The translations under genes were made by a program, and so were the position numbers. A DNA stretch of 64,000 bases, taken from positions 143,490 through 207,489 of the IMG/VR virus record IMGVR_UViG_3300042544_001590. One strand, given 5' to 3'. The notes beneath the pieces were generated by a model that saw only the letters and a list, made by a program, of their open reading frames with translations, was not told the origin of the DNA and ran no database searches. Position 1 is the first letter of the stretch. Every line of letters begins with the position of its first letter. Below, in pieces: positions 4,416 through 59,175 of the stretch.

Positions 4416-4420
4416 ATGTT

Positions 4421-5165: not shown

Positions 5166-5171
5166 AATTCC

Positions 5172-20887: not shown

Positions 20888-20892
20888 ACCTT

Positions 20893-20915
20893 TATTTAGT
20901 CAAAAGTGTTAAATA
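20893..20915. promoter_or_regulatory. back-to-back late promoters
   Basis: TATTTA 20893 and TAAATA 20910, each 5 nt from an ATG. Confidence 0.75.
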
Positions 20916-20920
20916 TCTAT

Positions 20921-38901: not shown

Positions 38902-40740
38902 TTACCAATTCTTGCAGCTTTCGGCTTTGGGGGTTCCGGGTTTCGCTTTATCGCAACCATGTCTTGCTCGAAATGCTTTCTTTCTATCAGTGTTTCCACT
39001 ATCACCAGTTGCTTTCACACCTTTTTGTCCAAAATGGATTCTTTTATAACCCGAACCATCGGGGTCTTTTACACATTTAGTATATTTTTTACCCTTACGA
39101 TCACTGGATGCTTTTTGAGTAACTTTGGTGCATTTCTTGGATTTTTCTAAGAACACGGCAACTTCCTGAAGATCAATCATGAAGTCGTTGATATCAACAT
39201 TGAAAGATGATGCGTATTTGTTTGCCAATTCATCAAAGGATTCGTTCACCGTTCCTTCATCTCTCATTCCTTGCACGGTGGACAACAATTGCGTTGCACT
39301 GTTAGCACCACTTCTGGTTATAGACCAAAATCCCTTGAGTCGTGAATTGATAATATCCTTGGATGTTTTATTAAATGGTAAATTCTTGACAAGTTTCTTT
39401 AATTCTGGGATGGCGGCATTCCATTGATCCTTTGACTTGATTTCTTCCAATTTCTTGATGAACTCTTCCATTGCCATATAACGGGGATCAACATCCAAAT
39501 TCTCCAAAGGAATGGTTTTTCTTTCCATACCTCGACCCGCAATGGAATTGAAGAATTTTTGTAATGATTGTGCTGGAAGTTCTCCGACTCTCCGCATCAC
39601 TCCAATGTTTATGTTGCGATTCAATGTGCGGGGATCAAAATTTTCCAATCCTCTATCGAATCGATTTACATGATAATCAATAAATGAAAATATGGGATTA
39701 TCATCAGTTGTTAATTTTTTCAATAATCCCAATTTATAAAGAAAATCTGTTTTATTAACATTTAAAAAATCAACCCCGGTGGGTATTTCACTATCTGATA
39801 TTCCATGCTCTATTTTTAACATATCCAATATCCCTGCTGCTTTGTTGTTGATTAAACTTTTCACCTTCGCCAATACAGTATCATTGGATTTCATATTGTT
39901 GGATGTTTTTGTTTCTATTTTTGAATTTATTTCTTCAAATCGTTCATCCGCAGCGTTTGAAGCCTTTATAGCATTTATCAATTTTTTTTCAGCATCTTCT
40001 AATTTACTTTGAACGGAAGATAATTTTTTAACATCTTGTAAAAGAATAGATAATTCTATCTCCGCTTGCTGGATTTGACCGCTTAGGGTTTCCTTTTTTT
40101 CTTTAATCCTAGTATTCTTTTTTTCGGTTTTTTTTCTTTGGATAAAGGATTTGATTTGATCGATTCTATCACTACCATATAAAGAACTATCAAGAATTTC
40201 TTTGAGTCTATTCACTTCGTCTCTCGCATCCGAAGCTTGTCCCGCTCTTTTTTGTTGAGAGACGAGAGCATTATTCCACTCTTTTTCATTATCATCATTT
40301 ATAGTATCTATTCTTAATCCTCCTACCAGTTTAATTTTACCATCTATATCTTCTTTCTTTTCACCGCTGTATATTTTTTTAAAATCTTCAAAGAATGTTT
40401 TGGAATTGAATAGGATTGCAAAAGCATTAGCCATTTCTCTATCTCGCGCAGCTTTCAATTCATAGGTATCCTGTTGACTAACACCTTTGGAGGTGTCATA
40501 AAGATATTTTTTCATCTGATCTATTGGTTTTTGCTTTTCAAAATTGTCAACTTTGCCAACAGGACTGGACGAATAACCAGAGGAAGTTGATGCTCCAGCA
40601 ACTCCCCCATCGGCTGTAATACCAGCTTGTTGCCCACTGATATTCTGTGGTCCTATATTTCGTTGCGCCCTAAAATACGCATCTCCCCCGCGAGTTCCCT
40701 TTGCTTCCAGCGCCAAATTATATAAATCATCAAAGTTCAT
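38902..40740 (-). CDS. coiled-coil protein with basic C-terminal domain, putative internal head protein
   Basis: MNFDDLYNLALE-A; C-terminal IHFGQ...RKKAFRARH.C. Confidence 0.6.
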   Translation of the reverse strand: MNFDDLYNLALEAKGTRGGDAYFRAQRNIGPQNISGQQAGITADGGVAGASTSSGYSSSPVGKVDNFEKQKPIDQMKKYLYDTSKGVSQQDTYELKAARDREMANAFAILFNSKTFFEDFKKIYSGEKKEDIDGKIKLVGGLRIDTINDDNEKEWNNALVSQQKRAGQASDARDEVNRLKEILDSSLYGSDRIDQIKSFIQRKKTEKKNTRIKEKKETLSGQIQQAEIELSILLQDVKKLSSVQSKLEDAEKKLINAIKASNAADERFEEINSKIETKTSNNMKSNDTVLAKVKSLINNKAAGILDMLKIEHGISDSEIPTGVDFLNVNKTDFLYKLGLLKKLTTDDNPIFSFIDYHVNRFDRGLENFDPRTLNRNINIGVMRRVGELPAQSLQKFFNSIAGRGMERKTIPLENLDVDPRYMAMEEFIKKLEEIKSKDQWNAAIPELKKLVKNLPFNKTSKDIINSRLKGFWSITRSGANSATQLLSTVQGMRDEGTVNESFDELANKYASSFNVDINDFMIDLQEVAVFLEKSKKCTKVTQKASSDRKGKKYTKCVKDPDGSGYKRIHFGQKGVKATGDSGNTDRKKAFRARHGCDKAKPGTPKAESCKNW

Positions 40741-40745
40741 ACTAT

Positions 40746-40768
40746 TATTTAGAACAAATGACTAAATA
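40746..40768. promoter_or_regulatory. back-to-back late promoters
   Basis: TATTTA 40746 and TAAATA 40763, each 5 nt from an ATG. Confidence 0.75.
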
Positions 40769-40773
40769 ATCCT

Positions 40774-41541
40774 ATGGGCAAGAAATTTGATGCTATCTAT
40801 GAAGCTGTTGTGAGTCGTTCCGAAGTGGGGGGTTATCTTCCCGGCGATATCATAAAATTTAGGGATGGATATAAAAACACGGAAACTTACAAGTATATGC
40901 CATTCACTCTCAGGAAAGAAGTGGATGAATTGGCGACTTGCGGATTGAACATCAAAGTCGTTCAGGTTGGAGACAAACAATCAGGATATTCCATTGGAAA
41001 TCAATTCAAACCAGCATCCCAGATCGTTCTCACCATTGCTGCTGATCATGGTGGTGGTAGAACTTATGGTAGAGTGGTTGTCTGTCCCGCCATGGTTGAT
41101 ATGGTGGATGTGAGCGCAGGAGTTCCGGTTCCCGATCAATTCAAGCGCAAGGATACTGTCATCATCAAGCCCAAACCCTTAAAAATTGATCCAAAGATCA
41201 TCACCAATGTCACTGACAAGGGAAATGGTAAGAATACCCCCACCGATCTGAAATTGGCGGGAGAATCCAAGGCTTGGGAATCCACCAAGGAATTGGCTGA
41301 TTTGTATATGGAATCTTTGGGGGAGGTTCCCCTGAGAAATATGCCTCCAGAAAAATCTTTAGGGGAGGTTCCTCGGCGTGATCCGAACACACAACCCCCA
41401 ACAAAAAACAGATTGAATTTGCTTTATGATAGATTACCAGAACTTAAAAAAGCTATAGAAGATGTGAGGTATGGTTCTTTTAAAGAGTTCTATAACAAAA
41501 TTTCAGAGTTTAAGGATTTTCTTGATAACGAGTTTGTTTAA
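40774..41541 (+). CDS. hypothetical late protein
   Basis: MGKKFDAIYE; duplicated SLGEVP.R near the C-terminus. Confidence 0.6.
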   Translation: MGKKFDAIYEAVVSRSEVGGYLPGDIIKFRDGYKNTETYKYMPFTLRKEVDELATCGLNIKVVQVGDKQSGYSIGNQFKPASQIVLTIAADHGGGRTYGRVVVCPAMVDMVDVSAGVPVPDQFKRKDTVIIKPKPLKIDPKIITNVTDKGNGKNTPTDLKLAGESKAWESTKELADLYMESLGEVPLRNMPPEKSLGEVPRRDPNTQPPTKNRLNLLYDRLPELKKAIEDVRYGSFKEFYNKISEFKDFLDNEFV

Positions 41542-41569: not shown

Positions 41570-42286
41570 ATGGCACAATATAATAACAAAGATCAGCGCA
41601 ATCTGGAAGAACTCCTTGAAGAAGGGTGGATGGATCGTCTCAAGGCACGGGGAGCCGAAGCTTTGGGTTCCGTCAAAGGAGTGGGGCAACAAATCAAAGG
41701 TGGCTTTCAACAAGCTGCTGGCAGTGGCTTGAGTAAGGCTGGAGATTGGCTTGAAAGCGATAAGATTTCTCGTAAAGGGGATAAATACACGCAACAAGGT
41801 CAAAAAAGTGAGCGAGAAGGAAGCGTCTCTGGTCACAATGCCAAAGTCCAGTATCTTCAGAAGAATATTGACAAACGTATTGACTCATTTGTTGCCGATA
41901 TCAAAAATGATATTAAAAAGCTTGGTCTGGACATTGGTAACATTGAAATCGTGTCTGGTATCAATGCTGCTCTTGGACAACTCAAGAAAAGCGTGAGCGG
42001 TGCAACACCTCCTCCTTTACCACAACAATCTGGCGCAACACCTCCTCCTTTACCCCAACAATCTGGCGCAACACCCCCACCACTTCCAAAACAACAAACA
42101 CCGGAGCCAGAAGAGGATGAGCCGGAAAATCCCGTGGAATACTCTTACAGAAAAGCTATTAGTAGGAAGAAAAAAACACAACCAAACACTAATCCCCGTA
42201 AAAGTAAGGTGAGAAAAGACCCATTTGCAAAATATGCCGCTCCCGAACAGGAAGAGGATTTGGACAAGATGTTTTGGGAACGCTAA
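41570..42286 (+). CDS. hypothetical late protein with PPPLP repeats
   Basis: TAAATA-N5-ATG 41570; LEELLEE-G. Confidence 0.6.
   Translation: MAQYNNKDQRNLEELLEEGWMDRLKARGAEALGSVKGVGQQIKGGFQQAAGSGLSKAGDWLESDKISRKGDKYTQQGQKSEREGSVSGHNAKVQYLQKNIDKRIDSFVADIKNDIKKLGLDIGNIEIVSGINAALGQLKKSVSGATPPPLPQQSGATPPPLPQQSGATPPPLPKQQTPEPEEDEPENPVEYSYRKAISRKKKTQPNTNPRKSKVRKDPFAKYAAPEQEEDLDKMFWER
41996..42094 (+). repeat. 3 x 33-bp coding tandem repeat (SGATPPPLPQQ)
   Basis: Seen directly. Confidence 0.9.
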
Positions 42287-43197
42287 AACAATTCCTCAAG
42301 CTGTAACAAGCAAGCAATACCACAAATCTCCCTGTCCGTAACGGATATCATCTTAAACAGGTTCTCCGCAATGATAAGGATAGCCTGTTTTTTTGTGGTA
42401 TCATCCAAGGATAAATCATAAAAATAGTTCAACAGGTCTTTCAGAAGGGATTCGTGATCGGAATCGAACAATTCCTCGTTCTCAATCAGAAATTTGCGTG
42501 TTTTCAGGGTATCTCCCGATTTGAGATTGGTGTAAATCAAATCCATCACCTGATTGGTGTCTTTTTTCGTCTCAATGGAGAGAATCCCTGATTTTGAATA
42601 TTTTTCCAATTCATTGATACATTTCCTGATATCGGGATAATGGCTTTTGATCAGGGCAACCAATGGTTTCTTCTGATCATCAGGAATCTCAATTTCCTCT
42701 TTTTTCAGAATCTCCAGACACCTACGAGTAACATCTTTCAGGGATGTGTGGAGTGTGAGACTCTGGCAACGCGATTGGAGGGCGGGAATGATGCGATGCT
42801 TGTAATTGCCCGTGAGAATGAAACGTGTGGTGGATGAATAGGATTCCATGACATTCCTCAAAATTGCCATGGAACTTTTTGATAGATAATCAGCCTCATC
42901 CAAAATGACAATTTTCAATCCCCCGTCAAAGCTCTTCGTTTGGGAGAATCCGATAACTTTATCCCTGATCGTATCCACCCCATTCTCATCGGAAGCGTTA
43001 ATGTAAAGATAATCACAATTTAGGATATCCTTTGCCAATATTTTGGCCAATGTTGTTTTACCAACACCACAAACCCCCGTCAATAATAGATTTGGAACAT
43101 CTTTACCAAAATCTTCGATGATTTTTCTGGTGGTGTCATCCACCATTAAATCGTCTAGCGTCTGTGGTCTGTAACGTTCTGTCCAAGGATTGCTCAT
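42283..43197 (-). CDS. clamp loader ATPase subunit (T4 gp44/RFC-like)
   Basis: W.ERYRP, GVGKTT, NASDE.G, ILDEAD, ALQSRC, PDIRK. Confidence 0.93.
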   Translation of the reverse strand: MSNPWTERYRPQTLDDLMVDDTTRKIIEDFGKDVPNLLLTGVCGVGKTTLAKILAKDILNCDYLYINASDENGVDTIRDKVIGFSQTKSFDGGLKIVILDEADYLSKSSMAILRNVMESYSSTTRFILTGNYKHRIIPALQSRCQSLTLHTSLKDVTRRCLEILKKEEIEIPDDQKKPLVALIKSHYPDIRKCINELEKYSKSGILSIETKKDTNQVMDLIYTNLKSGDTLKTRKFLIENEELFDSDHESLLKDLLNYFYDLSLDDTTKKQAILIIAENLFKMISVTDREICGIACLLQLEELF

Positions 43198-43946
43198 ATG
43201 CCTACCAAACCAATAGCATGGTTTGAGCGATTGTCAATAGTCCGAACCAAATTTGCACAATCCAATAGACTGTCATATGTGCCAACGTCGAACCAAAATC
43301 CATCCAATTTCTCAACACCAACACCTTCTTTATCATTCATCATGCGAATCAGGTCAACAATTTCCAGTTCTCCTCTAGCAGATGGTTTGACTTTTTTAGC
43401 CATTTCCACAACTTCATTGGAAAACACATAAAGACCAATCACTGCATCTTCGGAAATAAATTCTTTCGGTTTCTCCACAATTTGAATAATATTGCCATCT
43501 TCATCTGTTTCAACCACACCATAGGCGGATGGGTCTTTCACTTTATATGTGTAGATGGTGTTCGGTTGTGGTTGTATTGGGGAATTACCAATAATAACAT
43601 TATCACCAAGAATCAGGCAGATTTCATCTGCATCTTTGACAAATTCTTCCCCAACGATAAAAGCATCGACTAATCCTTTGGGAGAATCTTGGATTGCGTA
43701 TGATAGATTTAATCCGAATTTACTCCCATCTCCAAGTAGAATCTTGAATTGTTTTTGTTGATCCTCGTCGGCATTAATGATGAGGATATCAACATATCCC
43801 ATATCTTTCAGCGTTTGAAGTGGAAATGCGATGCAGGGCTTGTTGAAAATTGGTAAAAGTTGCTTTGATATAACCTTGGTAATCGGGTATAATCTCGTAG
43901 CTTTTCCGCCCGCCAAAATTAGACCACGTTTAATCGTTTCTTGCAT
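43194..43946 (-). CDS. rmlA: glucose-1-phosphate thymidylyltransferase
   Basis: GLILAGG..TRLYP.T...SKQLLP, LGDN, EKP, SARGELEI, W.D.GT. Confidence 0.9.
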   Translation of the reverse strand: MQETIKRGLILAGGKATRLYPITKVISKQLLPIFNKPCIAFPLQTLKDMGYVDILIINADEDQQKQFKILLGDGSKFGLNLSYAIQDSPKGLVDAFIVGEEFVKDADEICLILGDNVIIGNSPIQPQPNTIYTYKVKDPSAYGVVETDEDGNIIQIVEKPKEFISEDAVIGLYVFSNEVVEMAKKVKPSARGELEIVDLIRMMNDKEGVGVEKLDGFWFDVGTYDSLLDCANLVRTIDNRSNHAIGLVGI

Positions 43947-44847
43947 ATTTCTCCTCTATTTCGTTTTTAATTCTCTTATCTTCCGCTTGTTTCTCAAGCA
44001 TTTTCTCAAAACATTCCTTCATCACATCCTTCTCAAATCGCATCTCATAGATTTCCTTTGATTTGGAGCCATCCAGAACACAATTGCTTCTTCCAGTGGC
44101 AATGGGAAGATCGGCAAGATATACGAATTTCCAATTATCGTTGTGGAATCCGTATTCTTTCATGACATCACACACTTCCTGTGTGGTTAATGCCTGTGGA
44201 TTGATGACATTGTAGATGTTCTGTCCTTTCCATTTACCGACTTTTTTAATCAAAAGATTCTTCACAAATTCGCAGAAATCGGGGATATATGTCTTGGAGT
44301 TCTTGAAATTGATCAAATCGTCGTATTGTCTAATTTTGTTCAAATAATTCCTATTAGATGATTCGTAATGGAATGGCATACGAACCCTCAGAATGATATT
44401 ATCCATATTTTTTGATAAATTTTCAAAAGCGTGTTTTGATTTGGAATAAAATGAAGCCCTATTACAGAATAATCCATAATTTGGGGAATCTTCCTCGTTC
44501 CACACTTTCTCATATCCATCATAAACACAACCAGAAGAAACATGGAGATAATTCACTTCATGTAATTGACATACAGCATTTACTTTTAAAGGAGAAACTG
44601 TATTGAGTTCCCAACACAATTCTTTTTTCATCTCCGCTTCATCAATGTTGGGTCTTCCCGTGAATCCCGAACAGTTAATCACGGTATCAATGGTATTATT
44701 GAGAAGAAATTTGTGGAGGATTTCCACTTTATGATAATCAATCTCTTCCGCTGATTTGATAATCACGTTAAAATCGTTTTTCAAATGATTGTAAAGATGA
44801 TTACCAACGTAACCCTTCCCTAAAATTAATAAATTAAGCTTGCTCAT
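43930..44847 (-). CDS. RmlD-like NDP-4-keto-6-deoxyglucose (epimerase/)reductase
   Basis: Likely ATG 44847; G.GYVG, GFTGRPNID, SSGCVY, YSKSK, LRVRMP. Confidence 0.8.
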   Translation of the reverse strand: MSKLNLLILGKGYVGNHLYNHLKNDFNVIIKSAEEIDYHKVEILHKFLLNNTIDTVINCSGFTGRPNIDEAEMKKELCWELNTVSPLKVNAVCQLHEVNYLHVSSGCVYDGYEKVWNEEDSPNYGLFCNRASFYSKSKHAFENLSKNMDNIILRVRMPFHYESSNRNYLNKIRQYDDLINFKNSKTYIPDFCEFVKNLLIKKVGKWKGQNIYNVINPQALTTQEVCDVMKEYGFHNDNWKFVYLADLPIATGRSNCVLDGSKSKEIYEMRFEKDVMKECFEKMLEKQAEDKRIKNEIEEKYARND

Positions 44848-45055
44848 ATGTGTTTTCAATAAATTCCCGAACGTTTTCCAAATTACAAATATCATTTTCG
44901 TATAGATATTCCTGTATGCCCTCACATAAATCATCAGCCATTTGGGAAATCTCTTCGTCATCCACAGTATGAAGGAAATCCTGTAAATCCATAATGGATT
45001 TTATGATTTTCTCTTCGTGTAGTTCCAATTTTTTCAGTATCGTATTCTTTTTCAT
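44834..45055 (-). CDS. hypothetical protein
   Basis: 73 aa; first gene of the rml/gp44 operon. Confidence 0.55.
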   Translation of the reverse strand: MKKNTILKKLELHEEKIIKSIMDLQDFLHTVDDEEISQMADDLCEGIQEYLYENDICNLENVREFIENTYEQA

Positions 45056-45125
45056 TTATGTAGGGATTTATTTAGGTTTTGGTTGATGTCAATACGAAAT
45101 ATGGGTTGATTTGTTAAATAGTATT

Positions 45126-46229
45126 ATGCCAAAGATTTCCCAATTAACATCTGCAACATTACCTATTGTTGGTAATGAGGTGGCTATCATCAATCAAAAT
45201 GGAACCACTTATTCAAGTGCTTTAAGTAATTTTATTGGGGGTGGATCGAACGTGTCATCCTTATCTTCAAATTGGCAGAACACTTACACCACATTTTCCT
45301 CAAATTCTGCCAATTATGCAAAGGTTAATGTCAATAATAATTTTTCATCTACCCAAACGTTCACCACAGGTTCAATAAATGTCGGAGGATTTCCTTTATC
45401 TGCGACAGTGAGTAATAGTTTGTTTGGTGGTAATCTCGCAGGTTTCGGTGCTACGTGTGCATGTTTCTCCAATTTCTTTGGTTATAACGCAGGTAACGGT
45501 GCCACATGCGCATCCAATTCCAATTTCTTTGGTCAAGGCGCGGGTTACAATACCACAAACGCATATAGCTCCAATTTCTTTGGTTCAAACGCAGGTTTCG
45601 GTGCCACAAACGCATCCAATTCCAATTTCTTTGGTTCAAACACAGGTTTCGGTGCCACAAGCGCATGTAATTCCAATTTCCTTGGTTCAAACGCAGGTTA
45701 CGGTGCCACAAACGCATCCAATTCCAATTTCCTTGGTAGATACTCAGGTAACGGTGCCACAAACGCATCCAATTCCAATTTCCTTGGTTCAAACGCAGGT
45801 TTCGATGCCACAAACGCATCCAACTCCAATTTCCTTGGTAGATACGCAGGTAACGGTGCCACAAACGCATCCAACTCCAATTTCCTTGGTAGATACGCAG
45901 GTTACTATGCCACATACGCATCATTCTCCAATTTCCTTGGTCAAGGCGCAGGTAACGGTGCCACAAACGCATGTCACTCCATATTCATTGGTTCAAACGC
46001 AGGTAACGGTGCCACAAACGCATGTCACTCCATATTCATTGGTTATAACGCAGGTTTCGGTGCCTCTCTGTCAGCTTCAATCGCCCTTGGCTCTTGTGCT
46101 ATCCCCACATCACACAATCAATTAGTGTTGGGGTCGTCAGCATACCCACTATCAACTGTTAATAGCGGCAACTGTTTAGTTGTAAACATAAATGGAACTA
46201 TGAAGAAAATAGCGTTGCTTTCCGTTTAA
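45126..46229 (+). CDS. fibre/adhesin-like protein with 17-aa beta-roll repeats
   Basis: TAAATA-N5-ATG; MPKISQL N-terminus; SNF(F/L)GxxAGxxATxAxx repeats. Confidence 0.7.
   Translation: MPKISQLTSATLPIVGNEVAIINQNGTTYSSALSNFIGGGSNVSSLSSNWQNTYTTFSSNSANYAKVNVNNNFSSTQTFTTGSINVGGFPLSATVSNSLFGGNLAGFGATCACFSNFFGYNAGNGATCASNSNFFGQGAGYNTTNAYSSNFFGSNAGFGATNASNSNFFGSNTGFGATSACNSNFLGSNAGYGATNASNSNFLGRYSGNGATNASNSNFLGSNAGFDATNASNSNFLGRYAGNGATNASNSNFLGRYAGYYATYASFSNFLGQGAGNGATNACHSIFIGSNAGNGATNACHSIFIGYNAGFGASLSASIALGSCAIPTSHNQLVLGSSAYPLSTVNSGNCLVVNINGTMKKIALLSV
45471..46065 (+). repeat. about 12 x 51-bp coding tandem repeat
   Basis: Units start at 45471 + 51n. Confidence 0.95.
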
Positions 46230-46234
46230 TGCTA

Positions 46235-46242
46235 TATAAATA
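46235..46242 (+). promoter_or_regulatory. canonical T4 late promoter
   Basis: TATAAATA-N5-ATG 46248. Confidence 0.8.
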
Positions 46243-46247
46243 GCAAT

Positions 46248-47120
46248 ATGATAAAAAATGCTATTTTTCATATTGAGGGGGGGTTGGGTAAAAACATTGT
46301 AGCCACTTCGGTTATCCGTTCCTATAAAAAGGAACATCCAATCCACAACATTATAGTAAATTCTGCATATCCTGACATTTTTCAAGGAAATCCTGATATT
46401 GATAGGTGTTATCTATTGGGAAATACTCCGTATTTTTATGAGGACTTTATCTTTGATAAAGATTGTGAAATATTTGCACATGATCCATATAAAACAACGG
46501 CACATATCACCAAACAACAAATATTGGTGAAATCGTGGTGTGATATGATAGGGGTTACTTATGATGGTTTAAATCCGAATATCCATTTTAATTTTAGGGA
46601 AATGGAAATATCCAGAGCGTTACTACCTCAAACTGATAAACCCATTCTCATCTTTCAACCATTTGGAGGCGCACAAAACCAAGAATTTCCATACTCATGG
46701 ACAAGGGATATTCATCCTTTCATTGCCCAAGAAATAATCAATAATCTTAAAGAACAATATACAATATTGCATATTTGTCACCCCCACCATCCTCAATTAC
46801 AAAATGTGATTCGCTATGATAAAAATCAAAATAAAAAGATTTTATGTGCCATGTTGAATCTTTCTAAAAAAAGAATTCTAATCGACTCTTCCTTACAACA
46901 TGCTGCGGCTGCCATGGGATTACCATCAACAGTGGTGTGGGTTGGGACACAACCGGAAGTATTTGGTTATGATATGCATAATAATATAACTCCCCATGTT
47001 ACCTTTCCAAAGGGTAATATTAATTCGTATTTATATGATTATAGTTTCAATGGAATCATCCACGAATGCCCATATGATAACATTTATCAAATTTTCAATA
47101 TCGAAAACATCATAAAATGA
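46248..47120 (+). CDS. GT9-like (GT-B) glycosyltransferase
   Basis: GGLGK, NPDID, IDSSLQHAAAA.G.P..VVW. Confidence 0.75.
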   Translation: MIKNAIFHIEGGLGKNIVATSVIRSYKKEHPIHNIIVNSAYPDIFQGNPDIDRCYLLGNTPYFYEDFIFDKDCEIFAHDPYKTTAHITKQQILVKSWCDMIGVTYDGLNPNIHFNFREMEISRALLPQTDKPILIFQPFGGAQNQEFPYSWTRDIHPFIAQEIINNLKEQYTILHICHPHHPQLQNVIRYDKNQNKKILCAMLNLSKKRILIDSSLQHAAAAMGLPSTVVWVGTQPEVFGYDMHNNITPHVTFPKGNINSYLYDYSFNGIIHECPYDNIYQIFNIENIIK

Positions 47121-47908
47121 GAGATATATTTTATGTGTCCGGCTTACCCAGATCGGGAAGCACTCTTCTGATGAATCTGATGGCACAAAATCCTAAAGTA
47201 TTCTGTACTCCTACATCGGGTTTGAATCAATTGATGAATAATATCAAAACATCGTGGGGTAATATCATTGAACATCGATCTGATAAAAACGCTGGTAATG
47301 ATGAAAATTTGAAGCGTATCCTAAACACTATATTACATTCCTACCATAATACCGAAAAACCGTATGTCATCGACAAATGTAGGGGGTGGGGATTCTCCAT
47401 TGAAATGTTGGAGGCAATCACCAATAAAAAAACCAAGATCATAGCACCAGTTAGAGATATAAAGGATGTTCTTGCGTCTTTCGAATTATTATATCGAAAG
47501 GGTTCCTACAAGTTCAACCCCCAAGGACCAATGCCCCAATGTTTAACAACTGAAGGTAGGATGATGCATTGGGCAAGTTTGGATGGGGAAGTCGGTGCTG
47601 CTTACGCAATATTAAAGGATGCTTTTTTAAGAGGATTGGGGGATAGATTCCTTTTGGTGGATTATGATTATCTGACACATAATCCTAAAATTGTCATGGA
47701 CGTAATTTGGGATTTCCTCAATATACCCAAATGTGAACATGATTTTGAAAACATATTGAACCAAACACCAGAAGATGATGGTGTTTATAATTATGTCGAT
47801 TTACATAAAATTAAGAGTAAAGTCGCACCATCCAGTTCAAAAGCTAAAGAAATTTTGGGGGATGAAATATGTAAAGGATTGGATGGTTATGAATTTTGGA
47901 AGAAATGA
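47117..47908 (+). CDS. sulfotransferase
   Basis: 5'-PSB GLPRSGSTLL; 3'-PB VRD..DVLAS. Confidence 0.85.
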   Translation: MRDIFYVSGLPRSGSTLLMNLMAQNPKVFCTPTSGLNQLMNNIKTSWGNIIEHRSDKNAGNDENLKRILNTILHSYHNTEKPYVIDKCRGWGFSIEMLEAITNKKTKIIAPVRDIKDVLASFELLYRKGSYKFNPQGPMPQCLTTEGRMMHWASLDGEVGAAYAILKDAFLRGLGDRFLLVDYDYLTHNPKIVMDVIWDFLNIPKCEHDFENILNQTPEDDGVYNYVDLHKIKSKVAPSSSKAKEILGDEICKGLDGYEFWKK

Positions 47909-47920
47909 CTAAATAATGAT

Positions 47921-48289
47921 ATGTCCATATTAGGTAATAACACACTACCAACACCACCCCCGACGCCCAATAAGGAAGTCCTATTGAAACAAGCGGTATC
48001 CCGTATCAAAAATCTTTCCAAGGAATGTTTCGGTAATTTGGTGAGAACCCAACGAGAAGGTATTAAGATTGTTTGGGAGAACGAAAACCTCACCCCGCAG
48101 GAAATAATTGATGAGATGGGGTCGGATGTTTTTAAGATTTTTCAATTCCATGGGGAGCTTACACAATTTATTCTGATGTTGGCCCAAGAGGATGGAGCAA
48201 CGGTTGATGTTAAGTATCCCACCCACTCATTCACCGCAAACCTTAGTGCTGGAACTATCACCGTCCACGATACACCTTACCAACAATAA
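47921..48289 (+). CDS. hypothetical late protein
   Basis: TAAATA-N5-ATG. Confidence 0.6.
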   Translation: MSILGNNTLPTPPPTPNKEVLLKQAVSRIKNLSKECFGNLVRTQREGIKIVWENENLTPQEIIDEMGSDVFKIFQFHGELTQFILMLAQEDGATVDVKYPTHSFTANLSAGTITVHDTPYQQ

Positions 48290-48293
48290 TTAT

Positions 48294-49322
48294 ATGAAAA
48301 AACAACCGACATTGGGAGATATATATGGACAAATGCTGAACAGTGTTCAAGTCGTTCAAGAGAACGCACAGGAAAACATCAACAAGTCCAAAAAAATTCC
48401 CAAGCAATCCAAAAACGCTTTCAACGAAACAAATCCCTTGCAAAAAGGTGGTCCATCTGAGAAAAGCGGTTATCACAAAGCTCTGAATGATACTTATGAT
48501 GAGGATGAAGAGCGTAAGTATGCTAATCTTGATAAACTTAAAGAAAAGTTGAAGAATCCCAATCTTTCTGATAAACAGAAGGAATCTCTCAAAAAAGAAA
48601 TTGCAAGAATGGAGAGTGGAATCCAAAGAGAGGAAGCGGAAGAGAGAATTCACAAGGAATCTAAAAAAATTGCAAGAGATAGACTAAATACATTTATGAC
48701 TAAGAAATCTACATTTGATAAGTTGTTTGAATCCGTTATGGGTAATAATTTTGACCAGCAAGAGGATGCTCAAGAAGTTGATGCCCTCGGCCTTGGTGAT
48801 GCTCCCATGGACGATGAGTTTGGAGATGACGAATTCGGTGACGACGAAGACCAAGTTACATTTACTCTTGATCGTGCCACAGCACAAAAGCTTCACGATG
48901 TTTTGATGGGAGTTCTTGATGGTGGTGGTATGGAAGATGAAGGCGATGATCTGGACTTCGATACTGAAGATGATTTTGGAGGAGACGATGAAATGGACGA
49001 AGACAACGAAGAAGAAGACGATTTCTCCTATGACGAAGACGAAGAGCGCGGAACCTTCCCAACTGACAAGGTTGGTAATGATGGAACCGTTGGTGCCAAG
49101 GATGGCAAAGGTGGTGGTCAACAACACAAGCTCCAAGGTCGTAGCAATAAGGTCAATGGTCGTCCTCAACCAAAAGGTCAAAAAACCAAGGTAGTGGGAA
49201 CCACTGACAAGGTTGGTAATGACGGTGATTACGGTCATGCTCTCCATGGTGCAAAGCAACCCGATATGGGCAAGCAGAACAAAGTTTCAGACATTCGCCA
49301 AGCGGAAGATTTCTTCCGTTGA
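48294..49322 (+). CDS. acidic low-complexity protein, possible prohead core/scaffold, with nested start at 48696
   Basis: Asp/Glu-rich; internal TAAATA-N5-ATG; TDKVGNDG twice. Confidence 0.55.
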   Translation: MKKQPTLGDIYGQMLNSVQVVQENAQENINKSKKIPKQSKNAFNETNPLQKGGPSEKSGYHKALNDTYDEDEERKYANLDKLKEKLKNPNLSDKQKESLKKEIARMESGIQREEAEERIHKESKKIARDRLNTFMTKKSTFDKLFESVMGNNFDQQEDAQEVDALGLGDAPMDDEFGDDEFGDDEDQVTFTLDRATAQKLHDVLMGVLDGGGMEDEGDDLDFDTEDDFGGDDEMDEDNEEEDDFSYDEDEERGTFPTDKVGNDGTVGAKDGKGGGQQHKLQGRSNKVNGRPQPKGQKTKVVGTTDKVGNDGDYGHALHGAKQPDMGKQNKVSDIRQAEDFFR

Positions 49323-51084: not shown

Positions 51085-52854
51085 ATGGCAGCTAAAAAGA
51101 AACATGAATACATGGGGAATCCGAATCTCCCCACTGCCAATGCGGTGTTTGAATATACACCGGAAATGGTGGTGGAAATTCAAAAATGTAAAGAGTCTCT
51201 AATACATTTTGCTGAAAATTATTTTTATATTATCGATCCCGATGAAGGTAAAAAGGTTATTCCACTCTTTGATTACCAAACGAGATTATTGAAGGCGTTT
51301 GAAGATTTCAAACAAAATATAGTTTTGAGTTCTCGCCAGAGCGGAAAAACGACGGTGATGACTATATTAGCATTACACGTAGCATGTTTTGAAAATCATA
51401 AAAATATTGTTATTGTTGCGAATAAAGAGGAAACAGCTAAAAACATATTCAAACGTGTTAAGTTGGCTTATGAAGAATTGCCTAACTGGTTAAAACCCGG
51501 AATTAAAAAGTGGGGAGATACTTCAATGGAATTGGCGAATGGTAGTTGTATTGAAATTTCAACCACTACTGGAAACGCAGCGAGGGGTAAATTTGTCAAT
51601 TTGTTGCTATTGGACGAATTAGCATTTATCGATCCGCCAAGCATAGTTGAAGACTTCTGGAGATCGGTGTATCCAACAATTTCCCGCGCTAAAACATCTA
51701 AAATTCTTATTACATCAACACCAAACGGAGTTGGTAATTTGTTTCATAGATTATATACTGGATCGGTAAAAGGTGAAAACAGATTCCACTATGAAAGAAT
51801 TGATTGGTGGGAAGTTCCGGGTCGTGATGAAGAATGGAAAAAAGATCAAATTAAAGATTTAGGTTCCCACGAGGCGTTCATGCAGGAATATGGGAACGAA
51901 TTCCTAGACAATAGCCAACAATCCATTGATGAAGCCCTATTTGACCGTCTCAAAAACGAATGCCGTGAACCCAAACACATCCTCAAGGAAGGTGCCTATA
52001 AAATATGGGAAGAATATGATCCCGAAAAAATATATGTTATTGGGGGGGACGTTTCCGAAGGTCTTGGTCTGGATGCATCCGTTCTCCAAGTTCTGGATGT
52101 CACCAATCCCAAGGAAATTATACAAGTTGCCGAATACTGGACAAATACCAAAGGGCCATCGGAATTCACCAACGAAGTGGTGGATGTTTGTGGACATTGG
52201 GGAAATCCTCTGCTATTGATTGAGCGAAACAACCAAGGAACGGGTGTTTGTGACACTTTGGCGAACACCCACATGTATCAGAACCTTGTGTCTTGGGGAG
52301 CTAAGGAAGCGCATAAGAATAAGCAGAACGGTATGATTTCCCATATCAACACCAAATATAAAGCGGTGGAGAACCAAAGATATTTCGTCAATGAAGCGCA
52401 ATCTGTGGTATTCCGCAACATTGACACGCTGAAAGAATTTAAGAATTTTGTGCGCTACCCCAATGGCTCTTGGAAAGCCAAAAGTGGGGAACACGATGAC
52501 CGTGTGATGGCATTCGTATGGGCATTGATGGCTCTCTACAAGGATATCACGGAATTATATTTTGAAATTGAGGAATTGGATGATTGCGATAAGCCTCTTG
52601 TGATCAAACCCATTGATCAGGGACTCCACCAATACAGATCGGCAACTTCCATCTACACCAACGAAGAAGTGCCTAAAATTGAGAATTCCAACATTGCCCC
52701 CATGCTCTTTGGAGGATACGGGGGGGCTGCTGTTAGTGACATGGCGGAATTGGAAGCTGCGGGATGGGCATTGCCTGATCATTCGGTGTTCTCCAATCCT
52801 GAAAGGAATATCAATCCTGATCAGTGGGCAGCGATGGAGAAATATTTCGGTTGA
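51085..52854 (+). CDS. terminase large subunit (T4 gp17-like)
   Basis: Y.GNPNL, SRQSGKT, LDELAF, STPNG, QEY, DVSEG.G.D, IERN, HDDRVMA. Confidence 0.95.
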   Translation: MAAKKKHEYMGNPNLPTANAVFEYTPEMVVEIQKCKESLIHFAENYFYIIDPDEGKKVIPLFDYQTRLLKAFEDFKQNIVLSSRQSGKTTVMTILALHVACFENHKNIVIVANKEETAKNIFKRVKLAYEELPNWLKPGIKKWGDTSMELANGSCIEISTTTGNAARGKFVNLLLLDELAFIDPPSIVEDFWRSVYPTISRAKTSKILITSTPNGVGNLFHRLYTGSVKGENRFHYERIDWWEVPGRDEEWKKDQIKDLGSHEAFMQEYGNEFLDNSQQSIDEALFDRLKNECREPKHILKEGAYKIWEEYDPEKIYVIGGDVSEGLGLDASVLQVLDVTNPKEIIQVAEYWTNTKGPSEFTNEVVDVCGHWGNPLLLIERNNQGTGVCDTLANTHMYQNLVSWGAKEAHKNKQNGMISHINTKYKAVENQRYFVNEAQSVVFRNIDTLKEFKNFVRYPNGSWKAKSGEHDDRVMAFVWALMALYKDITELYFEIEELDDCDKPLVIKPIDQGLHQYRSATSIYTNEEVPKIENSNIAPMLFGGYGGAAVSDMAELEAAGWALPDHSVFSNPERNINPDQWAAMEKYFG

Positions 52855-53111: not shown

Positions 53112-53621
53112 ATGAAGTGTTATTCTGATTACATCACCGATCTAAAAAATGATGAAGTCTTTGTATTCACTTCGAATTCATATGGTTTTCATGGTGCTGG
53201 GTCGGCTGGTTACGCATCTTTTGGAGAATTTGGTAATGTCTGGAGAAATCATGATTATGGTAGCAAACCAGATGGGTGGAAAGGTAGATGGAATGTGAAA
53301 GGAATTGCGGAAGGTATTCAAGAAGGACGGGAAGGAAAATCCTATGCGATAAGGTCTGTATTAGCACCGGGATGTAGAAGATCAATAACCAAGGGACACC
53401 TAAAAGCTAACATTCAGGATTTTTATGATTTTGCGTGTGAAAATCTTGATTGGAAATTCTATGTTGCTCAAGATGCCAAACCGGGATACAATGGTTATTC
53501 AGTGGAAGAGATGGTGGAAATGTGGTCTGTTGAATATCCTCCAGATAATGTTTATTTTTATAAACCATTCTATGATTTATTAAAGGAGCGTTTCCCATTA
53601 AATATGTTTAGTGTCAACTGA
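53112..53621 (+). CDS. phage non-structural protein, possibly macrodomain-like
   Basis: EVFVF.SN..G.HGAGSA, G.SYAI, KFYV. Confidence 0.5.
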   Translation: MKCYSDYITDLKNDEVFVFTSNSYGFHGAGSAGYASFGEFGNVWRNHDYGSKPDGWKGRWNVKGIAEGIQEGREGKSYAIRSVLAPGCRRSITKGHLKANIQDFYDFACENLDWKFYVAQDAKPGYNGYSVEEMVEMWSVEYPPDNVYFYKPFYDLLKERFPLNMFSVN

Positions 53622-54216
53622 AATAAAACAATCATTCTTAAATCGCAGCAGGAAGGATAAATTCCTTCTCGTTTTCGATTTACCCCCCATTCTCAAGAGA
53701 ATCCAATCCAATTACACAAGGAATGATAATACCATCATTCCCGATAGTGTCCAATTCAGCATCTACGGGACAATGGTTCCGGGTCTGACTATCAAAGCGG
53801 TTGCCACCCGATATGCGGGAGATACGCTTTATGTGTCAAGCCATAGCAAAGACCCTTATCCTCCCGTGAACGTCAAATTCAAGGTGGATTCAGGATATAA
53901 TAATTATTGGGCAATTTACCAATGGTTGAATCTCCAACATGACCAAAAGACAGGTCAATTTAATGCGAAAGGTATCATAGTGGATGGTAATTTTTCGGAT
54001 TATCAGACGGATATCACGATGTATGGACTGGATGAATATGATAATAAAGTGATTCAATTCAAATATACCAAGGCTTTCATAACATCAATCGATCAGCTTG
54101 AATTTTCCCAAAATTCTGATGGTGATATGGAGATAGAAAGTGGTTTTACATTTGTTTTTTCCCAAATGCACATAGAATTGCTAGGATGTGATAGGTATAA
54201 TCAAACTTTGAGTTGA
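53611..54216 (+). CDS. tail tube family protein (gp3 tube terminator/gp19-like)
   Basis: VPG, F.VD..Y.NY..IY.W, F.YT.AF.TS; TAAATA-N6-GTG. Confidence 0.65.
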   Translation: MSTEIKQSFLNRSRKDKFLLVFDLPPILKRIQSNYTRNDNTIIPDSVQFSIYGTMVPGLTIKAVATRYAGDTLYVSSHSKDPYPPVNVKFKVDSGYNNYWAIYQWLNLQHDQKTGQFNAKGIIVDGNFSDYQTDITMYGLDEYDNKVIQFKYTKAFITSIDQLEFSQNSDGDMEIESGFTFVFSQMHIELLGCDRYNQTLS

Positions 54217-54809: not shown

Positions 54810-54854
54810 ATTGCTGTTTAGGAAATTTTTGGCGGGGATTTGCTAAATAGTAAT
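54810..54854 (+). promoter_or_regulatory. RNA hairpin enclosing the sheath late promoter
   Basis: About 20-bp stem with G-U pairs and one mismatch; TAAATA 54844-54849, ATG 54855. Confidence 0.6.
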
Positions 54855-57327: not shown

Positions 57328-59154
57328 ATGAATGGGCTTATTGAAGATAACAACACTAAAGAGTATATTTTAAATCGTAAAAATAATGGAATGCCCTTAT
57401 CGAAATCTTTATTTAAAAGAAAATTTCAAAGTATCTTAAATGAAATAAATGATCATAATAACAAATACCTCTTAAAAAATGATAAATTTTCACAAGAAGT
57501 GTATAATTGGATATTTGATATTAAAGAAAATCCAAAATGTCCGCTAACTGGATTGGATTTAAAATTTGATTATCATAAATTTAAATACAGACCAGTTAGA
57601 GGGAAAGGCAAACATTTACCAGACGTTCAACAAATTATAACAAGCAAAAGATTGAAAAATTTTAGTTATAAGAAGTTGTATGAGTCTAAAAGAAATGTTG
57701 AGCCAGTTGAAATATCATTTGAAAAAATAAGAAAATTATTAAATAAAAATTTCAAAAATATTACTAATTTTGGGGGGTTTACCACCAAATTCTTATCAAG
57801 ATTTCCAGAATATTATAATTATGTGGATTCGGATCAATTTTTACCATGGTGTGAATCCTTTCAGGAAAAAATATATTGTATTATCAACAATATTCCAGAA
57901 TCAATAGGTAAAAAATACATGGGATTTGGAAAGGGATATTCCAAATATGCTGATTGGGTGGAGTATCGTAGAAGTAAAGCTGCCAAAAAAATGAATGCTG
58001 CCGTAGATTACGACAAAGATAAGACCATATTAGAACTTAATAAAAGAATCGAAGAGTTAAAATTAGCCAATAAAGCAACCAATAATTTACGACAATCTTT
58101 TATGGGAACCGATCCAAATTTAGTTAGAAGTATTTTTACCCATACCTCAGAGTATCCAGATATAAAATTCAGCAATAGGGTATTTTTATTACTCAATGGG
58201 CAACCAGTTCCAGATAAAGGTTATATAAAACCAGTATTTTTCAGTTTGGATAAAGGATATAGTATGAGATTTTCATCTCAAAATGGAACTTCCAAACCGG
58301 AACAAGAATTATTTGATTGGTTGGGGGGATACATACCAAATCTAAAAAAAGATAGAACGGTGTTAAATGGTAGAGAAATAGATGTATTTTCTGAAGAGAA
58401 TGGTGTAGGAATTGAATATGATGGTGTATATTGGCATAATTATGAAATAGTGGGTGATAAATCATTATTTTTGAAAAATCAATTGGCGAAATCAAAAAAC
58501 ATAAGATTATTACACATTTTTGAAACTGAATGGCTACAAAAACAGGATATTGTTAAGAGTATTATTCTTTCTAAATTTAATATTTTTGAAAATAAATATC
58601 ATGCTAGAAAATGTGATATTAGAACGGTTGATAGTAAAATTTGTGTTGATTTTTTAAACGAAAATCATTTACAAGGTAAAGATAATTCAAAATATAAATA
58701 TGGACTCTATCATAAGGATGAGTTGGTTTCGGTGATGACGTTTGGGCAACGAACCATTACGAAAAATCCACAAATGGAATTGATTAGATTTTGCAATAAA
58801 AAAAATACTACAGTTATTGGAGGTGCTGGTAAATTATTCAAACATTTCATTAAAACGCATAATCCAACATATGTTAAGACATACGCAAACGCCAGAATAA
58901 GTGATGGTGATATGTATAAAAAATTAGGATTCTCTTTCAAACACCACTCACCCCCAAATTATTGGTATTATAAACCAGAAGCAGCCAAAAAGATCAAATT
59001 GATGCATCGAAGTGGTTTTCAAAAACATAGGCTGTCTGGGATTCTTGAAAGATTTGACAAGGGTAAAACGGAATGGGAAAACATGAGCGATCATGGATAT
59101 AAGAAAATCTACGACTGTGGCAACCTTGTTTTTGAATATCAAAGAGAAAATTGA
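57328..59154 (+). mobile_element. Hef-like putative homing endonuclease with C-terminal GNAT/Mom-like domain
   Basis: S..E, EID, IEYDG.YWH, HIFE.EW nuclease motifs; then NHLQG, ELIRF, GGA.KL, Y..LGF, IYDCG; AT-rich; between sheath and tube. Confidence 0.7.
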
Positions 59155-59175
59155 TCCGAAAAGCTAAATAATAAC

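Follow-up and report, generated by a model that had tools for sequence, protein, structure and literature searches.

Among the systems described so far, the protein heptosyltransferases TibC and Aah (BAHT; PDB 4rap, 4rb4, 4q1q) heptosylate the repeat solenoids of their autotransporter substrates, the adhesins TibA and AIDA-I, and their fold is related to that of the GT9 LPS heptosyltransferases WaaC and WaaF (PDB 2h1f, 1psw; Pfam PF01075), which classically act on the LPS core. In mycobacteriophages, phage-encoded glycosyltransferases decorate the phage's own structural proteins (Freeman et al. 2023, PMC10527164). Sulfotransferase genes are repeatedly annotated in cyanophage, pelagiphage-like and OM43-phage genomes, and the sulfation of collagen-like and tail-collar proteins has been predicted for related bacterial sulfotransferases on the basis of their operons (Iyer et al. 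2010, PMC2938197). The closest solved sequences of the sulfotransferase studied here are the tyrosylprotein sulfotransferases TPST1/2 (PDB 5wri, 3ap1). The sulfation of a fibre is not known to have been shown for any phage.

The locus that we analysed lies in the complete 207-kb genome of a freshwater T4-like phage (IMG/VR record IMGVR_UViG_3300042544_001590), within a window of 64,000 nucleotides that corresponds to positions 143,490 to 207,489 of that record. An initial annotation of this window, made from the sequence alone, had described at 45126-48289 a fibre gene, a promoter driving a coupled GT9-like transferase and sulfotransferase pair, and a small late gene, without any PAPS synthesis gene in the window. 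This observation is confirmed, and the four ORFs are found at these coordinates. The features of the locus and of its surroundings are the following.

43194..43946 (-), RmlA-like glucose-1-phosphate thymidylyltransferase, without the late motif and co-oriented with the gp44 clamp loader gene
43930..44961 (-), RmlD-like SDR, a 4-reductase acting on a dTDP-4-keto-6-deoxyhexose, whose true start is probably near 44847, the Rossmann motif beginning at residue 44 of the ORF
44834..45055 (-), conserved 73-aa ORF without family match, divergent from the fibre gene
45114..45120 (+), late-type promoter element TTAAATA, 5 nt before the fibre ATG
45126..46229 (+), repeat protein of 367 aa, the putative fibre
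45467..46064 (+), 51-nt tandem repeat array inside the fibre gene
46235..46242 (+), TATAAATA, which contains the late element ATAAATA, 5 nt before the transferase ATG at 46248
46248..47120 (+), GT-B glycosyltransferase of 290 aa with a predicted GT9/TibC-like fold
47117..47908 (+), PAPS-type sulfotransferase of 263 aa, whose ATG overlaps the transferase stop (ATGA, 47117-47120)
47909..47915 (+), late-type element CTAAATA, 5 nt before the ATG of the small ORF
47921..48289 (+), small ORF of 122 aa, for which the family and fold searches returned no match
48294..49322 (+), very acidic protein of 342 aa (80 D+E) with two (T/S)YDEDEER motifs, without a late motif at its start and probably co-transcribed with the small ORF

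The 8-mer TATAAATA, which the initial annotation had taken as the promoter, is not enriched in itself, since the window contains 5 copies against 4.94 expected, and it is only one variant of the phage's own signal. In contrast, the positional motif HTAAATA-N5-ATG (H being A, C or T) is found 18 times in the window against 1.36 expected, and none of 100 shuffles reaches 18. It precedes the fibre gene (45114), the transferase gene (46236) and the small ORF (47909), as well as the sheath, tube and baseplate genes and, with a spacing of N6, the terminase gene. The genome also encodes a homologue of the T4 late sigma factor gp55 (43% identity, E 1.5e-14). Late expression is inferred from these sequence features, as a search for transcript data found none. 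None of 64 distinct sulfotransferase upstream regions carries the motif, whereas those of fibre homologues in relatives do, so that the sulfotransferase gene must be read through from the gene upstream. The additional promoter of the transferase is lineage-specific, being present in only 2 of 13 distinct transferase upstream regions of relatives, while the element of the small ORF is conserved in the relatives L003, L015, L017, L018, L022 and L059 (the numbers designate loci of related viral contigs).

The array inside the fibre gene has a period of 51 nt, 11.7 copies and 83% matches (TRF score 685) and corresponds to 13 copies of a 17-aa unit, SNSNFLGSNAGxGATNA, with invariant Ser and Thr in each repeat. 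The protein is almost devoid of charge, with 1 Asp and 1 Glu in 367 residues. The repeats are preceded by a conserved N-terminal motif, MPKISQL...G.E....Q.G.T, and followed by a conserved C-terminal one, NQLVLGS...LVVNINGxxKKIALLSV, and the members of the family range from 367 to 996 aa through repeat number. The AF2 model gives a pLDDT of 90-98 for residues 100-310 and predicts a solenoid with one short strand per 17 residues. It has no significant PDB match, TibA and Ag43 being among its weak matches, and the only phage-database matches of the protein are PAU gp257 and a "virion structural protein" of a Methanosarcinales virus. In the absence of proteomics, the assignment as a virion fibre is therefore an inference.

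The sulfotransferase is above the curated Pfam cut-offs, with 50.2 bits for PF13469 (Sulfotransfer_3, cut-off 27) and 41.3 bits for PF00685 (Sulfotransfer_1, cut-off 22); it matches phrog_27463 and belongs to a largely viral clade. The 5'-phosphosulfate-binding loop PRSGST (P11 to T16), K87 and the 3'-phosphate-binding R113 and S121 are invariant, the loop, R113 and S121 in 19 homologues, and align with the PRSGTT and VRD...S of TPST. The catalytic Glu that TPSTs carry about 21 residues after the Arg of this loop is not conserved, since in the HMMER alignment the Glu-Glu of the TPST motif CGEET aligns with P-T of the phage TPTSG, T33 being invariant. The transfer of sulfate from PAPS is inferred from these features.

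For the transferase, the GT9-like label has no support from sequence profiles: no Pfam hit at E <= 0.1, no NCBIfam hit and no result in a PDB profile search were obtained. It is supported by the predicted fold, as the AF2 model (pLDDT 91) has the GT9 structures 3tov, 1psw and 2h1f as top Foldseek matches (E 1e-9 to 1e-11; with 6dfe, E 9e-12 to 2e-9 and TMq 0.56-0.71), followed by TibC 4rb4/4rap. It is also supported by the C-terminal nucleotide-sugar motif DxxLxHxAAA, in which IDSSLQHAAAAMGLPSTVVWVGTQP aligns by hhalign with VDTGLSHLTAALDRPNITVYGPTDP of E. coli WaaC and with WaaF, D213, S214 and H218 being invariant. At the N-terminal turn corresponding to the GT9 "LGD", placed without a residue-level structural alignment, the family has an invariant GG-x-GK, which reads GGLGK here. 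More than 2600 homologues were found, some of them named ADP-heptose:LPS heptosyltransferase by JGI.

The absence of a PAPS synthesis gene holds for the whole 207-kb genome. On the other hand, RmlA-, RmlB- and RmlD-like enzymes are encoded, which the initial annotation had not seen. The RmlA-like protein matches PF00483 (E 2.3e-54) and TIGR01207 at 258 bits, below the 360-bit cut-off; the RmlD-like protein matches PF04321 (E 2.4e-18) and TIGR01214 at 67 bits, also below cut-off; the RmlB gene is distant. The RmlA gene stays clustered with the fibre, transferase and sulfotransferase genes in the rearranged relatives L005, L017, L021, L023, L052 and L059, the RmlD gene is syntenic in relatives, and homologues of the 73-aa ORF occupy the same position in L005, L006, L010-L013, L017, L021, L023, L052 and L059.

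The order fibre-(transferase)-sulfotransferase-(small ORF) is kept in close relatives at two different genome positions, and as a cluster with RmlA/RmlD even where orientations are inverted. The transferase lies 18 nt after the repeat-protein gene here and, in 49 of 53 more distant loci, 18-58 nt after the gene of a same-strand G/S/T/N-rich protein, most with the same N-terminal motif; in pelagiphage HTVC111P its homologue directly follows the annotated tail fibre gene. The sulfotransferase has a protein of at least 400 aa within two genes in 52 of 65 loci, against 46% for other genes of the same loci, a comparison whose Fisher p-values overstate independence because the loci are phylogenetically related. 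These neighbours include collagen-like tail fibres, Kelch, RCC1, CBM and Peptidase_S74/YadA-head proteins, and other glycosyltransferases (GT25, GT4, GT2) and methyltransferases are also recurrent neighbours. Bacterial homologues lie beside giant surface proteins or, in Pseudomonas, next to a PMT_2/ArnT-like membrane glycosyltransferase. The small ORF, for its part, is a general downstream companion of fibre genes and not of the sulfotransferase, a point that the initial annotation had missed: 19 of 20 homologues in sulfotransferase loci lie directly after the sulfotransferase gene, but in 79 loci found with the small ORF itself only 21 have the sulfotransferase in between, the ORF elsewhere directly following the gene of a G/S/T/N-rich protein of 412-1359 aa. 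In other phages a Sulfotransfer_2 protein, from an unrelated sulfotransferase family, or a methyltransferase fills the same slot between the fibre gene and the small ORF.

The model we favour, with moderate confidence only, combines these observations in a late-expressed fibre-decoration module. The analysis establishes that the repeat-protein, transferase and small genes each carry the late promoter element, that the sulfotransferase gene is translationally coupled to the transferase gene, and that the phage encodes Rml-like enzymes but no PAPS pathway; the sequence of events that follows is inferred, as are the catalytic activities, the acceptor and the place of the repeat protein in the virion. 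Earlier in infection, the Rml enzymes would enlarge a dTDP-6-deoxyhexose pool. Late in infection, the nearly uncharged Ser/Thr/Asn-rich solenoid fibre would be made and the GT9-like enzyme would put sugars on its repeats, in the way TibC and Aah modify TibA and AIDA-I. The sulfotransferase would then use host PAPS to sulfate that glycan, and the fibre would so acquire a polyanionic surface. The small ORF would be an assembly factor or partner of the fibre and would take no part in the chemistry. Several results weigh against this model. Only 10 of 46 dereplicated sulfotransferase loci have the GT9-like gene within two genes, about 16 of 46 when other GT families are counted, and one 96%-complete sulfotransferase-bearing genome showed no GT9-like, GT2 or GT1 match, so that the sulfotransferase need not act on a phage-made glycan. 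Its closest solved relatives are not carbohydrate sulfotransferases, a complex prediction for sulfotransferase plus fibre gave no answer, and genes next to tail-fibre genes are a site for accessory "moron" insertions, which makes adjacency alone weak evidence. The interpretation given in the initial annotation, namely that late timing and adjacency point to a sulfated glycan on the fibre or virion rather than on DNA, is thus partly supported: the late timing, the link between the enzymes and the fibre, which recurs across rearranged relatives, unrelated fibre types and in a podovirus, and the absence of phage PAPS genes are borne out, while the sulfated glycan on the fibre remains a hypothesis. 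Its suggestion that sulfated polysaccharides bound by the host might be mimicked has no evidence for or against it.

Among the alternatives, the one that survives best, although we consider it unlikely, is that the sulfotransferase O-sulfates the fibre protein directly on Ser, Thr or Tyr hydroxyls, the GT9-like enzyme being a separate and optional decoration. In many relatives (L005, L017-L020, L023) the sulfotransferase indeed follows the fibre gene with no transferase in between, the nearest solved homologues are TPSTs (E 1e-8), the near-complete genome mentioned above lacks GT9-like, GT2 and GT1 matches, and the prediction of Iyer et al. (PMC2938197) is of this kind. However, the catalytic Glu of TPST aligns with the invariant T33, and the fibre, with its 1 Asp and 1 Glu, has no acid-flanked Tyr of the TPST acceptor type. 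Furthermore, the sulfotransferase accompanies fibres of unrelated sequence (collagen, Kelch, RCC1, solenoid), which is easier to explain by a common glycan than by a common peptide motif, and the Sulfotransfer_2 family, which fills the same slot elsewhere, holds carbohydrate sulfotransferases.

It is more doubtful still that the two enzymes modify a host envelope molecule (LPS, capsule, S-layer glycan or the phage receptor) late in infection, which could stop progeny from adsorbing to infected cells and debris, the position next to the fibre gene then reflecting a common insertion site for accessory genes, which often sit near tail-fibre genes. The classical role of GT9 enzymes, the JGI names of some homologues and the Pseudomonas neighbourhood are in its favour. 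Against it, the sulfotransferase would be transcribed from the fibre or transferase late promoter and is translationally coupled, the transferase is tied to a fibre-like gene in 49 of 53 loci and to a different fibre family in a podovirus, which random moron insertion would not give, and neither enzyme has a predicted membrane or secretion feature in the family searches, which are not a specific test of this point. Finally, a tyrosine sulfotransferase acting on the acidic protein encoded at 48294-49322 is very unlikely: although TPST1/2 are the closest solved relatives, its two motifs look like classical TPST acceptor sites and it is syntenic with the sulfotransferase in close relatives, five of 14 distinct homologues next to a sulfotransferase have no acid-flanked Tyr, the fibre-transferase-sulfotransferase-small block of L003 lies elsewhere without this protein, most sulfotransferase loci lack it, and the catalytic Glu is not conserved.

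The pairing of fibre gene and modifying enzymes in well over a hundred other viral contigs suggests that phages chemically decorate, probably by sulfation, their own fibres. A broader possibility, which we regard as tentative, is that many aquatic phages carry a fibre-decoration slot between a fibre gene and a small companion gene, in which interchangeable enzymes sit: two unrelated sulfotransferase families, methyltransferases and GT9-like transferases. In this phage the result would be a virion fibre coated with sulfated O-glycans made with host PAPS, and, as far as the papers searched go, it would be the first sulfated bacteriophage structural protein known. It would represent a new way for phages to tune adsorption, or to shield fibres, by charge. 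The comparative evidence ties this largely viral sulfotransferase clade and the very large GT9-like family to fibre genes, and so provides a concrete target. If phage fibres are glycosylated and sulfated, the receptor-binding proteins of abundant aquatic phages should be modelled differently, because their surface chemistry is not readable from sequence alone; fibre function would depend on host sulfur metabolism through PAPS supply; virion glycosylation would extend beyond mycobacteriophages; and enzymes for making sulfated glycoproteins would be provided.

When the locus is compared with the described systems, the resemblance to TibC/Aah lies in the GT9-like GT-B fold (matches to TibC with E 1e-7 to 1e-8 and TMq about 0.6) and in the position of the enzyme gene next to that of a predicted beta-solenoid protein built of short Ser/Thr-rich repeats. 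However, the phage enzyme has 290 aa against about 400 aa, its TM normalised to TibC is only 0.45-0.50, and it has only two invariant Cys, C98 and C274, and nothing like the four-Cys iron site of the dodecameric TibC. It is presumably cytoplasmic and is phage-encoded, the phage is predicted to make dTDP-sugars and not ADP-heptose, the presumed substrate is a phage protein and not an autotransporter, and a sulfotransferase is attached. WaaC and WaaF are the best structural matches and share the C-terminal D-(S/T)-x-L-x-H-x-A-A-A motif, but here the genomic partner is a fibre gene and not an LPS core cluster. TPST1/2 share the PRSG(S/T)T loop, the catalytic Lys and the 3'-phosphate-binding Arg/Ser, and differ by the catalytic Glu and by the acid-flanked Tyr, which is missing from the neighbouring fibre. 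In mycobacteriophages, the capsid and tail-tube C-termini are modified and no sulfation is reported, whereas here the presumed target is a fibre, the GT family is different and a sulfotransferase is added. In the operons of Iyer et al., a P-loop sulfotransferase is likewise co-encoded with fibrous collagen-like or phage-tail-fibre-like proteins proposed as its substrates, and collagen-like tail fibres are the commonest neighbours of the present sulfotransferase family in more distant phages. Those operons carry hydroxylases and often PAPS synthetases; this phage has neither next to the sulfotransferase nor, for PAPS, anywhere in its genome, and a glycosyltransferase takes here the place of the hydroxylase.

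The complete IMG/VR virus record of 207,489 bp, of which the window forms the last 64 kb, carries direct terminal repeats, originates from a freshwater metagenome and belongs to a distant T4-like myovirus. It encodes, among others, a gp44-type clamp loader, TerL, a tail sheath, two tube-like proteins, a gp6-like baseplate wedge, UvsX and a DnaB-type helicase. A DNA similarity search against 50,697 phage records gave no match, and the closest isolate terminases are 33-37% identical. The features noted in the window are the following.

41570-42286: ORF with a threefold SGATPPPLP(Q/K)Q repeat; the late motif at 41558 indicates that its start is ATG 41570 and not 41471.
42283-43197, minus strand: gp44-type clamp loader.
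43930-44961, minus strand: RmlD-like ORF with a 38-residue N-terminal extension before its Rossmann motif; since the relatives are about 300 aa long, the real start is probably near 44847, overlapping the end of a conserved 73-aa ORF.
45126-46229: repeat protein of 367 aa, here called the fibre, preceded by a late-type motif at 45114.
45467-46064: 51-nt tandem repeat inside the fibre gene.
46235-46242: TATAAATA, five bases before the transferase ATG at 46248.
47117-47120: ATGA overlap between the transferase and the sulfotransferase ORFs.
47909: late-type motif of the small ORF.
48294-49322: very acidic 342-aa protein (80 D+E) with two (T/S)YDEDEER motifs; an in-frame internal late-type motif with an ATG at 48684-48698 could give a shorter product.
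51085-52854: TerL.
53611-54216 and 59176-59745: two tail-tube (phrog_45) paralogues, one on each side of the sheath gene.
54855-57257: tail sheath.
57328-59154: 608-aa ORF between the sheath and tube genes, whose C-terminal 300 residues match HNH/homing-endonuclease PHROGs (E 1e-90) and which has its own CTAAATA 10 nt upstream.

The observation made in the initial annotation, that of a repeat fibre gene followed by a coupled transferase-sulfotransferase pair and a small late gene, is confirmed by our analysis. In the fibre ORF, which starts at ATG 45126, TRF finds the 51-nt unit repeated 11.7 times, which corresponds at the protein level to 13 copies of SNSNFLGSNAGxGATNA with Ser3, Phe5, Gly7, Gly11 and Thr15 nearly invariant. 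The whole protein contains 56 Ser, 59 Asn, 29 Thr and 15 Tyr, but only one Asp and one Glu. The third ORF matches Sulfotransfer_3 and Sulfotransfer_1 above their cut-offs. The second ORF matches no Pfam or NCBIfam model, but an AlphaFold model built on 26 homologues (mean pLDDT 91) has as its best PDB matches a Veillonella GT9 enzyme, E. coli WaaF and WaaC, and then the protein heptosyltransferase TibC (E 9e-12 to 1e-7). A profile comparison with WaaC and WaaF aligns only the C-terminal IDSSLQHAAAA segment with the heptosyltransferase D(T/S)GLxHxAAA motif. The designation "GT9-like" is therefore fair as a statement about the predicted fold and one motif, and not as a statement about family membership. 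In the case of the small ORF, searches of Pfam, PHROG, phage sequences by tblastn and the Atlas gave no lead.

The AlphaFold model of the fibre is a very confident solenoid (pLDDT 90-98) for residues about 100-310, with one short strand per 17 residues, whereas the N-terminal 82 residues are of low confidence. Foldseek finds nothing significant for this model, and the weak list (E > 0.003, TM < 0.25) holds pentapeptide-repeat proteins, glycosylated TibA, Ag43 and tailspikes. The family varies from 367 to 996 aa by repeat number while keeping both termini, so that "fibre" is a reasonable but unproven label. In two public assemblies (loci L003:3602-5129 and L006:3398-5838) the fibre homologue is uncalled or split into two ORFs (458 + 281 aa with X or N), which is probably the result of assembly collapse in the 51-nt repeats.

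The promoter described in the initial annotation, TATAAATA, is not enriched as an 8-mer, with five copies against 4.94 expected, and it was replaced in our analysis by a positional motif. A k-mer screen of the 60 nt upstream of 354 ORFs of the whole genome showed CTAAATA and TAAATAA enriched about 10-12-fold, and the listing of every NTAAATA site showed that [C/T/A]TAAATA sits exactly five (sometimes six) bases before the start codon of about 45 genes, with no room for a Shine-Dalgarno sequence. These genes include those of the sheath, both tube proteins, TerL and the baseplate wedge; examples within the window are the sites at 4385-4423, 20885-20923, 40738-40776, 54843-54857 and 59164-59178, and several form back-to-back divergent pairs (4385/4409, 20885/20909, 40738/40762). 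In the window, HTAAATA-N5-ATG occurs 18 times against 1.36 expected and none of 100 shuffles reaches 18. Three of these sites are at 45114 (fibre), 46236 (transferase) and 47909 (small ORF), whereas UvsX, the helicase, the clamp loader and the RmlA and RmlD genes lack the motif. The genome also encodes a homologue of the T4 late sigma factor gp55 (43% identity over residues 10-117, E 1.5e-14), while scans for sigma-70 promoters and terminators remained at chance level. In the T4 geometry TATAAATA lies at -13 to -6, the A of the ATG would then be +1, and the late mRNAs would be leaderless. This is an inference, since the metatranscriptome runs of the same study hold none of this stretch. A second motif, TTAAAAACTAGAnTAnAAT, lies 20-29 nt before the ATG of 75 genes, mostly outside the window (5 sites inside), and 120 of its 124 sites are on the + strand. 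Its TAnAAT part ends about 6 nt before the ATG, so that this probable early/middle promoter may also give leaderless or nearly leaderless mRNAs. In relatives, the fibre and small genes usually keep the late motif, but the transferase keeps it in only 2 of 13 distinct upstream regions and the sulfotransferase in 0 of 64. On this sequence evidence the sulfotransferase would thus always be read through from the gene before it, usually from the fibre promoter.

Divergently upstream of the fibre gene lie the conserved 73-aa ORF, the RmlD-like reductase and an RmlA-like thymidylyltransferase. An RmlB-like dTDP-glucose 4,6-dehydratase (TIGR01181, 329 bits) is encoded at genome position 4426-5439 (1423-2436 of L168, the same locus), far from RmlA/RmlD in the linear record, but a few kb past the window's end on the circular map and only about 20 kb away from them across the terminal repeat. 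No RmlC was found in the genome. The genome contains no ATP sulfurylase and no PAPS_reduct/CysD-type protein, and its single APS_kinase hit is rejected, because this 318-aa protein matches the KaiC/RadA-type ATPase family better and only its P-loop region matches APS kinase. The absence of PAPS synthesis genes noted in the initial annotation for the window therefore extends to the whole genome, and PAPS must come from the host.

The sulfotransferase has at least 539 homologues in the protein database and at least 538 matches in IMG/VR, and its nearest Atlas clusters are 91-100% viral. Among culturable phages, Synechococcus phages S-SKS1 and S-SRM01 carry homologues of it. In close relatives, the order fibre-(transferase)-sulfotransferase-small recurs next to RmlA/RmlD, and in the loci L003/L004 it recurs at a different place, between neck genes and the gp21-gp23 head genes. 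In relatives L052-L055, L059 and L061 the orientations are rearranged, but RmlA, RmlD, the 73-aa ORF, fibre, transferase and sulfotransferase stay together. The transferase is absent in about half of these relatives, and there the sulfotransferase follows the fibre gene directly. In distant loci the sulfotransferase lies beside other long proteins: collagen-repeat tail fibres, Kelch-like and RCC1-repeat giants, and a CBM_4_9 protein. A protein of at least 400 aa lies within two genes in 52 of 65 distinct loci, against 46% for other genes of the same loci, a comparison which is only indicative because the loci are related. Among 96 medium-sized neighbours in 46 dereplicated loci, the recurrent families are the GT9-like family (10 loci), GT25, GT4, GT2 and methyltransferases. 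Of four near-complete sulfotransferase-bearing genomes without the GT9-like gene, three carry GT2 or GT1 enzymes elsewhere and one shows none of the three families tested.

In 60 more distant viral loci found with the transferase itself, 53 had an upstream gene, and in 49 of these it was on the same strand, 18-58 nt away and rich in Gly/Ser/Thr/Asn. Most carried the N-terminal motif (M)xIKI(S/T)(E/D)LP...G.E..P.VQ..TR that the window's fibre shares, and about a third of the loci also had the sulfotransferase downstream. In the podovirus pelagiphage HTVC111P, the homologue (29% identity) starts at the stop of the annotated tail fibre gene, which belongs to a different fibre family. The small ORF was sought in viral contigs with a sub-alignment, the full alignment lacking conserved stretches, and was found in 79 further loci, in only 21 of which the sulfotransferase lies directly upstream. 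Elsewhere it directly follows a 412-1359-aa G/S/T/N-rich protein, some with Beta_helix or Laminin_G_3 domains. The hypothesis that it is a partner of the sulfotransferase is rejected, because about 50 of 73 loci have it without the sulfotransferase. In two other viral contigs (L137:5228-5959 and L140:5216-5959) the small ORF follows a 243-247-aa protein matching Sulfotransfer_2 (PF03567), and in a third (L097:2112-2672) a Methyltransf_24 protein, in exactly the position that the sulfotransferase occupies here. The presence of non-homologous enzymes in the same slot between a fibre gene and its companion gene argues for a functional link and against a chance insertion.

In cellular genomes (loci L264, L308, L256, L266 and L248, which include the 340-kb contig named below), homologues of the sulfotransferase at about 30% identity lie directly after giant surface proteins, namely a Cadherin-like/Big_9 surface protein (Teredinibacter), a PATR autotransporter-repeat protein (Dyella) and a PEP-CTERM protein (Methylococcaceae), or after a PMT_2 glycosyltransferase (Pseudomonas). 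On a 340-kb contig with cellular-type genes, the sulfotransferase follows a 2123-aa Peptidase_S74/YadA-head protein by 15 nt. The best genome matches to the sulfotransferase (38-43% identity) lie on contigs deposited as candidate-phyla-radiation MAGs (L250, L251, which is the record of the locus L007, L252, L254, L257 and L263), including single contigs of 207 and 388 kb. As these could be either cellular or mis-binned viral sequences, they were counted as neither.

The best-supported reading of these observations is a late fibre-decoration operon. In this model, the transferase would glycosylate the repeat solenoid, the invariant Ser and Thr of each unit being the obvious candidate acceptors, and the sulfotransferase would sulfate the product with host PAPS, while the Rml enzymes probably supply a 6-deoxyhexose. 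The gene identities, the late signals, the coupling and the synteny are established by the analysis, whereas the acceptor, the donor, the order of the reactions, the virion location of the fibre and sulfate transfer itself are inferred. The acceptor class of the sulfotransferase cannot be read from its sequence. Its closest solved relatives are tyrosylprotein sulfotransferases (E 1e-8), and the 5'-PSB loop, the catalytic Lys and the 3'-PB residues are conserved, but the TPST catalytic Glu aligns with an invariant Thr and the fibre has no acid-flanked Tyr. A complex prediction of the sulfotransferase with the fibre gave no answer and is not used as evidence. That the sulfotransferase would act as a TPST on the very acidic protein encoded two genes downstream is unlikely in spite of its (T/S)YDEDEER motifs, since five of 14 distinct homologues of this protein next to a sulfotransferase have none and most sulfotransferase loci lack the protein.

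The interpretation given in the initial annotation, that of a sulfated glycan on the fibre or virion, is thus supported only in part, and its suggestion that such a glycan mimics sulfated polysaccharides bound by the host remains pure speculation. We found no report of a sulfated phage structural protein in the literature searched. Phage sulfotransferases are annotated, but their role is stated to be unclear (PMC10580990). Related bacterial sulfotransferases, together with dioxygenases, were predicted by Iyer et al. 2010 (PMC2938197) to modify collagen-like and tail-collar proteins, whereas the sulfotransferase described here is coupled to a GT9-like transferase. Virion glycosylation is established for mycobacteriophage capsid and tail-tube proteins (Freeman et al. 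2023), whereas the candidate substrate in our model is a fibre. The nearest mechanistic analogue is the heptosylation of repeat solenoid adhesins by TibC/Aah.
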